Of a DNA stretch of 64,000 nucleotides, positions 494 to 6,349 are shown one piece after another. A model generated the notes under the pieces. It was not told the origin of the DNA. It searched no databases and saw only the letters and a list, made by a program, of their open reading frames with translations. This stretch comes from Oikopleura dioica (lineage: Eukaryota; Animalia; Chordata). How positions within the stretch are numbered: the stretch's first letter is position 1; every line of letters starts with the position of its first letter. The position numbers and the translations under genes were made by a program. The stretch spans positions 4,340,001 through 4,404,000 of the forward strand of contig OU015566.1 of assembly GCA_907165135.1 (NCBI GenBank), read 5' to 3'.

Positions 494-1627
494 ATGAAAA
501 TCTTCAACTTTTTGACTCTTGGAGCTTTTGCCAGTGAACTCGCCACTCCACACAGGTAAAGTCTTTTCCTCATTTCTAGTGATAAATCCAGCTCTAGAAA
601 TCGACGAGAAGTTTCTCAGTCCTTCACCGGAGAAGAAGATTTGGATGTTTACAACGAATTTTTGGCTGGTCTTGCCGGTAAGTCCTTTTTTCTCCCAAAT
701 TTTTTGTCTCGAATCGCGATTTTCGAGCTTTTTTTATTCAAAATTCTTCTTTAGGCGGAGAAGTTGACGACCTCGAGCAGCTGATCATGGATCTCATGGC
801 TCAAGGAGGCAGCGAAAACGAACGATTCATCCAGGAACCGACCGAGCTTGAAGTCCGAAAATTCCGACAACTCAAGATCATCGTCCTTTGGCTCCAAGCT
901 GAGCAGAAGTTTGGTCGATACTGCTACTACGGATGCTATTGGTGAGACTTAAAACCTCCCTCTAAGGGTCTTGACTGTTCTTTCTAGCCTTCCAGAGGGT
1001 TCGCACAACATCGCATCCGGCGGCTACGGTCGACCAGTCGACAACATCGATCAATCCTGCTTCGACTTCAAGCAGTGCTACAGATGCCTCGTCGAAGAAT
1101 ACGACGGCGAGCGAGAGTGCAAAGGCGAAGAAGTCGGCTACCGATTCGATCTTCTCACCAACGACGATGGCAGCAAAGATGTCGTCTGCACCAACACTCC
1201 CGGCAGCTGTCGATACAACATTTGCCAGTGCGATCTTCAGCTCGCCAGGGATTGGCCAAATACGAATCTGAGTGGGATGTTTCTTACCACTCTGCCAAGG
1301 TAAAAATAAATATTTTCAAAAAATTCAGCAGCCAATCAAAAGCCAGGATTTGTCTTCTTAGCCAATTAGAAGGCAGTTTTTTCTTAGCCAATCAAAACCA
1401 CCAGCTATGAGTCATTAAAAATGACTCATTTTCAACATTTTTTCACCCATTTTTCAACCCTTTTTCAGGGCGGTTTCGTCCGAGAAGACTACTGCCGAAA
1501 AGGAGCTCCAGCCGGAAACCCCATCGAAGAATGCTGTGGAGACAAGACCACTTTCCCACTGAACAAACCCCGCCGAAGCAACCAATGCTGCGACGGACCA
1601 ACTGCCAAGCCAGCTGGTCAATGTTAA
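494..1627 (+). CDS. Secreted phospholipase A2-like protein, catalytically degenerate (5 exons, apparent 1-nt frameshift near 1245)
   Basis: Exons about 494-555, 598-~678, 755-~941, 990-1299 and 1469-1627, with GT-AG introns. Signal peptide MKIFNFLTLGAFA, RNRR site, YCYYGCYC Ca-loop motif, PVDNIDQSCFDFKQCY (His-Asp positions read Phe-Lys), CQCD motif and Cys-rich tail. One extra C at 1245-1246 is needed to reach the GLAKYESEW frame and the 1300 donor. Confidence 0.85.
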
Positions 1628-4583: not shown

Positions 4584-4970
4584 ATGAGACTGACACTTTT
4601 AATGTCGATTTTTTTATACTTTGGTTTTGCTAAGAAGACCGGAGAAACGTAAGAGTAGATTTTGAGGATTTCTGATGGGAAACCAATAAAAAATTTCGAC
4701 AAATTTTGTACGGGCGGCCACTCAGCGGCTGATTCGCCGGTTTGCCGAAAATAGGCTTCTGATTGGTCGAAAATTTCAACGAAAAATTTGTCGAAATTTT
4801 TCTGTCGGTTCCAGACAGCTCTCTTTCTGATGATGACTTTTAGGAAAGAAGCGCAAATCGAAAGATTTAAAAAACTTATTCACGAGGCAAAGATCCGTTA
4901 TCTAAGACGAATGCTCATGGAAACATTGGATTCAACTGGTGGATACGGAATTCTAGCTGACTATTTCTGA
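4584..4970 (+). CDS. Small secreted cationic peptide, copy A (63 aa, 2 exons)
   Basis: Exons 4584-4648 and 4844-4970 with a phase-2 GT-AG intron containing a MITE. MRLTLLMSIFLYFGFAKKTGETKEAQIERFKKLIHEAKIRYLRRMLMETLDSTGGYGILADYF*. Paralogous to B and C. Confidence 0.8.
4670..4817. mobile_element. MITE family A copy (in the intron of peptide gene A)
   Basis: aaaaatttcgacaaatttt...ctgattgg...aaatttgtcgaaattttt(c)tgtcggttccagac. Matches copies at about 10031, 15735, 28645, 32175, 35781, 38535 and 48235. Confidence 0.8.
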
Positions 4971-5215
4971 CTCTTTCCCCTTTTTGTTTAAGAAAGAGTT
5001 GATTCTGAACCTCTGCTTTTTCTCGCCTTGCTAATTTCAAACAAGCACTTGAATAAATGATAAGAAAAAAACAATTGAACAATTGAAGAATGATGTAAAC
5101 GTTTTTTAAACAGTTGATTGCCTTAACAGTCGTCTTATGAATTAAAAATTGCCGAAAACTCGTGACATACAAAAAACAGATGAACTCGGGACTTCAGAGT
5201 TCAAAAAAAGATTTG

Positions 5216-5447
5216 ATGAGACTTGCATTTTTTCTTTTCTTTTTCATTTTATTTGTTTTTGCTGAGACCGATGCTGAATGGTAAAAAAGAGCTTTTTGTA
5301 AATTAGATCCATTGTTTTAGGAGAGCAAGGCGTCTTGAATATTTCAAGCGGCAAATACACTTGGCGAAAATTCGGATTATTTACCGAATGTTGAGGGAGA
5401 GATTGGACGAGATTGGGGGTTATGGAATACTTGCTGGTTATTTCTGA
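5216..5447 (+). CDS. Small secreted cationic peptide, copy B (63 aa, 2 exons)
   Basis: Exons 5216-5280 and 5321-5447 with a 40-nt phase-2 GT-AG intron. MRLAFFLFFFILFVFAETDAEWRARRLEYFKRQIHLAKIRIIYRMLRERLDEIGGYGILAGYF*. Confidence 0.85.
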
Positions 5448-5686
5448 CTGAAATTTACTCGAAAATAAAAGACGCATAACTATTTTAAAATGATGATTTT
5501 TTAATTTTTATTTTTTGATTGAAAATAAATTTATATTATATTTGCAACGCCGGACTTCTCTTAAATATGACGTCATTTTCTACTTTATTTTACCGAGAAG
5601 CCATTTAATGGTTAATGGTTATTAATAATAGAAATCAAGGATCTCCCTAATAAGTTGCTAAAGAGCTGTTGTCATAAGTTAAAAAA

Positions 5687-5931
5687 ATGAGACTGACACT
5701 ATTTTCGTTCATTTTTCTTGTCTTTTTTCGCGCGAATTGAAGGTGACCTGTAAGAGCTTGTATAAAATAAGATAGAATAGTGATTGATGAAATTGAAGGA
5801 GTTTGGCGCTGCTGGAAAAGTTTCACCGGCGAATTCACAATACGAAAATTCGCTACATTCGAAGAATGCTTGTGGAAAGACATCACAGAAAAGAGCATTT
5901 TGGAATTCTTGCCGATTTTGTTTCAGTCTGA
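5687..5931 (+). CDS. Small secreted cationic peptide, copy C (frameshift in T-run 5723-5728: assembly error or pseudogene)
   Basis: Exons 5687-5749 and 5799-5931. With the T-run corrected it reads MRLTLFSFIFLVFFARIEGDLSLALLEKFHRRIHNTKIRYIRRMLVERHHRKEHFGILADFVSV*. As written there is a TGA at 5738-5740. Confidence 0.7.
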
Positions 5932-6349
5932 GTTTTTTCAATAAAAAAGTCGGAAAAACCAACGTGAATTTCAAAAGAACTGAGTTGAGTTGGTACCCTT
6001 TACAACAAGAGAGCGCCAAGTGCACCCTGAATAAAGCGCCAAAATTTCCATAAATAACCATTCTCGTGGTAAAAGCACTATTCTTCGTACTAAGCCAAGG
6101 ACACCCTTAACCAATATAATATTTGCCACGTCGGATCAAACAACCCGAGAAATATTCAAAGAAGTCCACAAGTAAAAAAATCTGCCGCGCCGCATCAAAA
6201 ATGATTGAGTTTTCTACATCTGACAGGGCCTGTCTCATCCAGCATAGACCCAATTGTGGTTCTGACGCACTTGAAATTTTCCGGAAGCGGAGATTAATCA
6301 GTTTTTCTTTTTTTTTTCTTTTCAAGAAGTTTATTTTGTTCAGAAATTA

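Follow-up and report, generated by a model that had tools for sequence, protein, structure and literature searches.

What kind of genes are the three short, similar units that stand one after another on the plus strand at positions 4584–5931 of a 64,000-nucleotide (nt) stretch of the Oikopleura dioica genome (assembly GCA_907165135.1, contig OU015566.1, positions 4,340,001–4,404,000; this whole stretch is referred to below as the window), and what could their products do? A preliminary description of the locus, made from the letters alone, had proposed three consecutive two-exon genes for secreted cationic peptides of about 63 residues. Judged from sequence, the locus is one tandem cluster of very short genes for predicted secreted peptides, apparently undescribed and so far seen in Oikopleura-type DNA only. 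The cluster comprises three same-sense units, with gaps of 217 and 240 nt from the stop codon of one to the ATG of the next, and its span had been given correctly, the ATG of gene 1 being at 4584 and the stop codon of gene 3 at 5929–5931. Its elements are as follows.

4584–4648, plus strand: gene 1 exon 1, 65 nt, followed by a phase-2 intron; predicted signal peptide and a short charged tail
4649–4843, plus strand: gene 1 intron, 195 nt; donor GTAAGA at 4649, acceptor ttttag
4678–4812, within the gene 1 intron: miniature inverted-repeat transposable element (MITE) of about 135 nt, with 30-nt inverted ends at 4678–4707 and 4783–4812
4844–4970, plus strand: gene 1 exon 2, consisting of a split codon, 41 codons and a stop; domain of helix, hinge and aromatic tail, ending in Y-F-stop (TGA)
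5052–5057, plus strand: AATAAA, a polyadenylation-type signal, 82 nt past the gene 1 stop
5122–5170, plus strand: conserved non-coding block, about 45–95 nt upstream of gene 2, with AATTA and CGTGACA elements
5216–5280, plus strand: gene 2 exon 1, 65 nt, phase 2; predicted signal peptide with a V-F-A end, then an acidic tail
5281–5320, plus strand: gene 2 intron, 40 nt; donor GTAAAA at 5281, acceptor ttttag
5321–5447, plus strand: gene 2 exon 2; 41-residue domain with the terminus Y-F-stop
5464–5469, plus strand: AATAAA, 17 nt past the gene 2 stop
5687–5749, plus strand: gene 3 exon 1, 63 nt up to the canonical donor; ATG frame broken
5750–5798, plus strand: gene 3 intron, if the canonical donor is used; donor GTAAGA, acceptor attgaag
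5799–5931, plus strand: gene 3 exon 2; open 43-residue domain with the helix motif retained
5940–5945, plus strand: AATAAA, 9 nt past the gene 3 stop

As predicted coding units, genes 1 and 2 are intact. Each has 63 codons interrupted by a phase-2 intron, which is the length and the intron phase initially proposed, and the predicted signal peptide of gene 1 starts with M-R, continues with a 14-residue uncharged core and ends in G-F-A. The list of open reading frames (ORFs) compiled for the window holds only fragments of these genes, and this remark of the preliminary description applies to all of the cluster. The sequence motif reported there for the three exon-2 peptides is reproduced exactly, with 15 invariant columns in a gap-free alignment of 41 columns. 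With exon 2 of gene 1 as the query against all six frames of the complete 64-Mb genome, gene 2 is retrieved with E = 1.3e-8 and gene 3 with E = 2.7e-5, and these genome-wide values exclude chance similarity. Two other interpretations of the same nucleotides were considered. A single gene with alternative exons is ruled out, as an ATG, a signal-peptide exon, a stop codon and AATAAA are present in every unit separately, and a minus-strand ORF of 120 codons (5699–6061) overlapping gene 3 is without support.

The trio turns out to be one cluster of a larger family. The genome (64,281,565 bases in 19 contigs, with the window corresponding to C4:4340001–4404000) was searched with the exon of gene 1 and then with a profile; exons were queried one at a time, and intronless paralogues stood for whole precursors. 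At least 13 family loci are present in this O. dioica genome, and the word “triplet” is an understatement. The loci are distributed as follows.

C4, in the window: the trio listed above
C4:1.5346–1.5362 Mb: tandem array of four
C5, 8.366–8.368 Mb: tandem pair
C1:0.56 Mb, C1:3.40 Mb, C4:1.74 Mb and C4:3.10 Mb: single copies

Four of the 13 members are intronless, being single ORFs of 58–68 codons in which the signal peptide is contiguous with the conserved domain. These members make the join between the signal peptide and the helix directly visible and serve as natural controls for the spliced models. The intact intron-bearing copies, eight in number, all have a GT donor in phase 2 at an equivalent spot, a few codons past the predicted cleavage site; the donor is of the GTAA type in seven of them, and a T-rich AG acceptor follows. 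Intron length in these eight copies is 37–195 nt, and 37–79 nt apart from gene 1, whose intron is longer because of the MITE insert. At least 478 candidate copies of this MITE were found genome-wide; 40 of them were scored and are 83–88% identical.

A signal peptide, initially claimed for the three genes of the window, fits all 13 members by heuristic criteria: every N-terminus has an uncharged core of 10–15 residues with small residues at –1 and –3 after it, and a basic residue (K or R) is found within the first five residues in 11. AAAA directly precedes the ATG in ten of the 13 loci. An exact TATAAA box is positioned at –58 to –35 in six (P ~ 2e-7, given a background of 2.2% per 50 nt in the window); none of the three window genes has TATAAA 35–58 nt upstream. 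Downstream, AATAAA or ATTAAA is observed at most 32 nt past the stop codon in eight of the 13 loci. We are highly confident in the following predicted gene plan: an own start in an A-rich context, a signal-peptide exon, in most cases a phase-2 intron, an exon encoding the helix, hinge and tail, a stop codon that is mostly aligned, and AATAAA.

Two variants of membrane attachment were also considered. A signal-anchor membrane protein is ruled out by a hydrophobic core of only 10–15 residues with small residues at –1 and –3 after it, and glycosylphosphatidylinositol (GPI) anchoring by the C-terminal hydrophobic stretch of only about eight residues.

Conservation of the motif had been taken to imply selection, and the ratio of nonsynonymous to synonymous substitution rates (dN/dS) bears this out, being 0.14–0.31 among genes 1, 2 and the orthologous copies, that is, intact copies are under purifying selection. 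The mean pairwise difference is 0.46, 0.41, and 0.59 for the first, second and third codon positions, respectively. In paralogue pairs the proportion of synonymous differences (pS) is 0.55–0.87, that is, saturated, and the proportion of nonsynonymous differences (pN) is 0.12–0.38. For a C5 copy compared with its orthologue on a Logan contig (L026), dN/dS is 0.24.

A colinear orthologue of the cluster is present on a contig (L012) from Logan run SRR23998797; this accession lies in the range covered by the Daya Bay metagenomes of cellular plankton (PMC13392252). Contig L012 is aligned to positions 4878–5447 of the window at 68% identity. Exon 2 sequences are 69 and 83% identical, the latter value being that of gene 2, with zero gaps; the corresponding figures are 56% with 37 gap columns for intergenic DNA and 50%, again with gaps, for the gene 2 intron. 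The non-coding block at 5122–5170 is kept in this contig as well, and probably is a promoter element, with an enhancer as an alternative candidate.

Another orthologue (L027, JGI contig Ga0209092_10192183) corresponds to the intronless copy at C4:3.10 Mb. In this orthologue an intron separates the signal peptide from the domain, and the gene caller had read through the TGA stop. As one of these two orthologues is intronless and the other bears an intron, the intron at this boundary has been gained or lost within the family. The intron in L027 (540–650) and in L028 (120–235) carries a different MITE-like insert with inverted ends.

The cluster had been presented as three clean two-exon genes, and this description stands for genes 1 and 2, but not for gene 3. 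The frame that opens with the ATG at 5687 meets a TGA at codon 18 (5738–5740), and the F-A end with a charged tail, ascribed earlier to this gene and similar to that of the other copies, is found in the +1 frame, off the ATG frame. Up to the canonical donor GTAAGA (5750) the first exon has 63 nt, whereas 3n+2 is required both by the pattern of the family and by the reading frame of exon 2. The broken frame and the exon length are both likely explained by one surplus T in a T6 run at 5723–5728, and the frame stays open in one model only, which relies on a non-canonical GA donor (5734). Over its opening 43 nt, gene 3 shows 77% identity with the start of gene 1. In exon 2 the Gly-Gly hinge is lost and the end is D-F-V-S-V-stop instead of Y-F-stop, and dN/dS relative to other copies is 0.46–0.73, above the values for the intact copies. 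Gene 3 seems rather likely to be a decaying copy, unless the T run was misassembled or a GA–AG intron restores the frame. The third copy on contig L012 (870–1091) has an intact exon 1, and in its exon 2 the third codon is an in-frame TGA. Since gene 3 is broken in exon 1 and the L012 copy in exon 2, the lesions of the third gene are independent in two lineages.

The product of exon 2 has about 41 residues and consists of a long predicted helix, a Gly-rich hinge and a tail of the form G-[GD]-[FY]-G-I-L-A-G-[YF]-F. AlphaFold2, supplied with an alignment of 15 sequences, predicts one helix at residues 2–31, with the predicted local distance difference test (pLDDT) score of about 94 for residues 1–20 and 73 for residues 21–30, and a low-confidence turn at residues 35–38; the helical core suggested initially agrees with this prediction, and the initial view of small, Cys-free, secreted peptides is likewise supported. 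Column composition, charge and termini were scored over 15 sequences. Positions M23 and G35 are invariant, and F8, R22 (13 R, 2 K), E26 (13 E, 2 D), L28, L37, and A38 nearly so; at position 12 every sequence has L or I, and a strong preference is observed for K16, R18, Y19, G32, and F/Y34. The stop codon occupies the same aligned position, directly after the terminal F ([YFSKL]-F-stop), in 12 sequences. None of the 15 ends in Gly, that is, no C-terminal amidation signal is seen, and there are no dibasic sites flanking the peptide, which spans from the signal cleavage site to the stop. Inside the peptide, 11 sequences have a [KR]-[KR] pair at positions 21–22, and position 22 is R or K throughout the 15.

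The net charge of the domain varies from –3 to +7 and is zero or negative in four of the 13 genomic paralogues. Thus, “cationic” is a fair term for the window copies (+2, +6, and +6 over the exon-2 domain), but it does not describe a family trait. The hydrophobic moment of the whole helix is 0.04–0.31, and the fraction of shuffled sequences reaching the observed value is 0.29–0.97; for the best 18-residue window this fraction is 0.06–0.84. Amphipathicity above shuffled controls was found neither for the whole helix nor for the best 18-residue window.

The family had not been recognised from the letters, and no described match was found in Pfam, PDB, ESM Atlas, or a profile search of 1.84 billion representative proteins. 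Ten family sequences compared with Pfam yielded nothing relevant up to E = 10, with only sub-threshold noise (DUF1827, DciA, GMT-wHTH, and SpoIIIAH, E at least 0.12). PDB sequence searches, both with a single sequence and with a profile, retrieved nothing relevant, ESM Atlas gave no usable match, and Foldseek comparison of the AlphaFold2 model with PDB returned no match, as expected for a single helix. Known hormone families (CRF, PTH, calcitonin, secretin, and others) showed no match in Pfam, the protein profile search, or the Atlas. A word-based protein search found nothing with an intronless member as the query, and one unnamed 37-residue fragment with the profile. The HMMER profile search of the 1.84 billion proteins produced three matches only, all of them unnamed ORF fragments from plankton metagenomes, and no ascidian, vertebrate or other animal protein among the proteins searched. 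The matching contigs derive from two Logan runs with accessions in the Daya Bay range and from one record each of ENA and JGI. No named or annotated family protein was retrieved, the records of the window’s own genome being possibly outside the searched set.

Further, a scan of metagenomes with the C-terminal motif gave 422 pattern stretches and no relative, and a second metagenome scan with a DNA pattern gave only the L006-type orthologue, on two contigs; one JGI contig in addition to the sources named above came from this DNA-pattern scan. Hence, outside the genome, relatives have come from marine plankton metagenomes only. In the literature on Oikopleura antimicrobial peptides, neuropeptides, oikosins, and small ORFs we found nothing describing the family. 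The peptide motif is also absent from 11 supplementary files of the house-proteome paper (PMC3390340), where spectra were searched against the annotated proteome only; this test is weak, as the study could identify annotated proteins only. With precursors shorter than 100 residues, a signal peptide, and paralogues under purifying selection, we observe the features of a taxonomically restricted small secreted-peptide family. The family itself is apparently undescribed, while its general kind, lineage-restricted small secreted peptides in tandem arrays, is familiar.

What, then, could such peptides do? We favor, with slightly less than even confidence, a ligand-type mechanism acting via a specific protein partner. 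The signal peptide would be removed and a peptide of 40–46 residues released outside the cell, where it would bind its partner as a ligand-type signal or a recognition peptide. The binding surface would comprise a helix face (F8, L/I12, K16, R18, Y19, R22, M23, L24, E26, and L28) and the fixed, free C-terminal aromatic tail, and partner specificity would come from the variable positions across the 13 paralogues. The [KR]-R pair at positions 21–22 is a possible convertase site, whose use would free a 19-residue C-terminal peptide. A specific partner is favored because the polar residues and the exact C-terminus are conserved and the charge is not, amphipathicity is unremarkable, and purifying selection acts on the mature part as a whole. 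The preliminary description also leaned toward a specific partner, and the data fit this preference, as R22 and E26 are conserved (K16 and R18 less strictly), and net charge is not.

Still, several observations weigh against a ligand. The 13 paralogues, with tandem arrays in which copies are gained and lost, suit defence or structural products better than classical hormones. The usual marks of neuropeptides, flanking dibasic sites and a C-terminal Gly for amidation, are absent, and the internal [KR]-R dibasic is present in 11 of the 15 sequences only and is located inside a confidently predicted helix. Moreover, the conserved polar residues could equally serve self-assembly or the binding of matrix components. 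Of the two roles originally suggested, antimicrobial or hormonal, the former is weakened by the charge and moment data, and a neuropeptide in the usual sense would lack its flanking dibasic sites and amidation signal.

Comparison with known ligands shows both likeness and difference. Ligands of class B receptors, 30–45 residues long, include the CRF/urocortin, PTH, calcitonin, and secretin/glucagon families. The present family resembles them in size, the single long helix, a conserved core with variable flanks, and secretion. Unlike them, it has no Pfam match at E = 10, its precursor is minimal, with the peptide running to the stop codon, neither flanking dibasic sites nor a Gly-Lys/Arg signal are present, and there are 13 tandem paralogues in place of one or a few genes. 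ELABELA/Toddler offers an analogy in the precursor of about 55–70 residues, composed of a signal peptide and a short mature peptide and readily overlooked by ORF lists and gene finders. The two are unrelated in sequence, and the family studied here is multi-gene and lineage-restricted.

Some of the competing explanations draw on the genes adjacent to the clusters, namely, those encoding phospholipase A2 (PLA2). In the window the relevant features are as follows.

787–945, plus strand: ORF upstream of the PLA2 ORF, ending in a Y-G-C-Y-type motif; the PLA2 gene spans 787–1303
971–1303, plus strand: PLA2 ORF, matching Pfam PF00068 (Phospholip_A2_1) with E = 1.8e-7, exactly at the 32.1-bit cut-off

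A second PLA2 gene is located at C4:1.5316 Mb, 2.8 kb from the four-gene cluster and on the opposite strand. PLA2 genes are expanded in this organism, with at least 55–90 loci in the 64-Mb genome. The two cluster-adjacent genes are 31–36% identical to each other and rank 12 of 61; as they are not closest paralogues, a shared segmental duplication behind the linkage is ruled out. We treat the linkage as a lead, not as evidence.

Two other features of these neighborhoods may be mentioned. Beside the four-gene cluster there is an ORF of 323 codons (L029 1948–2919, that is, C4:1529948–1530919) with a long Thr-rich, mucin-like repeat and a Cys-containing C-terminal domain, which may be another secreted or house-type protein. 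At 2729–2974 of the window there is a short tandem repeat, translated as (D-I-R-Y/D-I-R) from one strand and as (V-T-N/F-V-T) from the opposite one; it probably represents a microsatellite-like array and not coding DNA.

The peptides might act as membrane-active host-defence products in the manner of cecropins, the secreted helix, hinge and hydrophobic tail inserting into microbial membranes, in an animal devoid of much of the classical immune gene repertoire. This possibility, which we hold to be unlikely, is consistent with small, secreted, Cys-free products built of a helix, a Gly hinge and a hydrophobic tail, with the net charge of +2 to +6 in the window copies, with tandem arrays having damaged copies in two lineages, and with the confinement of the family to one lineage. 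Both multi-gene clusters are also about 3 kb from a gene of secreted PLA2, an enzyme class proposed as a house-borne innate defence in O. dioica (PMC3390340). On the other side, the charge is not conserved (–3 to +7), with four paralogues neutral or anionic; the antimicrobial alternative is weak because the family as a whole cannot be called “cationic.” Hydrophobic moments are low and do not exceed those of shuffled sequences, and no antimicrobial family was matched in Pfam, the PDB profile search being likewise empty. Many families of antimicrobial peptides have a conserved prepro region and a diversifying mature peptide. The pattern observed here is opposite to this, as the mature part is under purifying selection and its polar residues are invariant.

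Cecropin-type linear alpha-helical antimicrobial peptides are found in insects and Ascaris, whereas the tunicate styelins and clavanins are unrelated to them. Cecropins share with our family the signal peptide, the Cys-free product of about 35–45 residues, the N-terminal helix, Gly hinge and hydrophobic C-terminal segment, and the tandem multi-copy arrangement. Unlike cecropins, the family has no sequence or profile match to them, its charge ranges from –3 to +7, and its amphipathicity is unremarkable. Moreover, its polar core residues are invariant, its mature peptide is under purifying selection, and its free aromatic C-terminus carries no amidation signal.

Another explanation, which we likewise consider improbable and give the same weight as defence, is that the peptides are accessories of the house or matrix, secreted by the house-building epithelium and having a structural, assembly or enzyme-partner role, possibly together with the neighboring PLA2. 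Of the 80 known house proteins, about half are orphans and almost a third come from duplication, and four contain phospholipase A2 domains (PMC3390340). The PLA2 genes are 3.3 kb upstream of the window cluster and 2.8 kb from the four-gene cluster, and, given about 60–90 PLA2 loci in 64 Mb, PLA2 linkage within 5 kb in two of seven family loci would be an event of about 0.2–0.4%, as estimated post hoc. However, neither of the two neighboring PLA2 genes is the closest paralogue of the other, no PLA2 gene is near the remaining five family loci, and the linkage may be due to chance; absence of the motif from the supplements of the house-proteome paper also counts against this explanation, with the weakness of that test noted above. 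Oikosins resemble the family in being Oikopleura-specific and secreted, they are often orphan and duplicated, and the cluster is linked to a PLA2-domain gene of the oikosin kind. They differ in being multi-domain in the schemas shown in PMC3390340; none is reported with the family motif, and membership is defined by detection in the house.

A narrower variant would make the peptides activators, inhibitors or targeting subunits of the expanded secreted PLA2 family, that is, components of a two-component extracellular system for defence or house processing, peculiar to larvaceans. We consider it very unlikely. If true, it would explain both the proximity of about 3 kb between the two clusters and PLA2 genes, and a core conserved for protein binding, not for charge. 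Weight beyond the explanations listed here goes to other roles.

Finally, it is barely credible that the units are not functional genes at all, being chance ORFs, relics of repeats, or pieces of a larger gene on either strand: the ORFs are indeed very short, gene 3 and the third copy of L012 are both interrupted, a MITE is present inside gene 1, and no annotated protein was retrieved, but 13 copies retain the frame, intron phase and intron position, four of them as intact intronless ORFs, dN/dS is well below 1 with synonymous sites saturated, the exons are gap-free relative to an orthologue whose non-coding DNA is only 50–56% identical, the MITE is entirely within the intron, and each unit has its own start, stop and AATAAA.

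In comparison with our preferred ligand-type reading and its competitors alike, the existence of the family is the firmer result. Orphan families of small secreted proteins are common in fast-evolving animals, and before a function is demonstrated the finding should be called useful, not startling. The family is readily testable, as peptides of 40–46 residues with no cysteines can be synthesised, and O. dioica is an established laboratory animal for which knock-down tools and single-cell atlases exist. Two-exon genes with about 190 coding bases escape annotation, and the small secretome of larvaceans may be substantially under-counted. Few chordate genomes are as small or evolve as fast as that of O. 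dioica, which has lost many conserved genes for signalling and immunity. A conserved, multi-copy family of secreted peptides, missed by ORF lists and databases, points to compensating, lineage-specific extracellular biology in this organism, be it signalling, defence, or house building.

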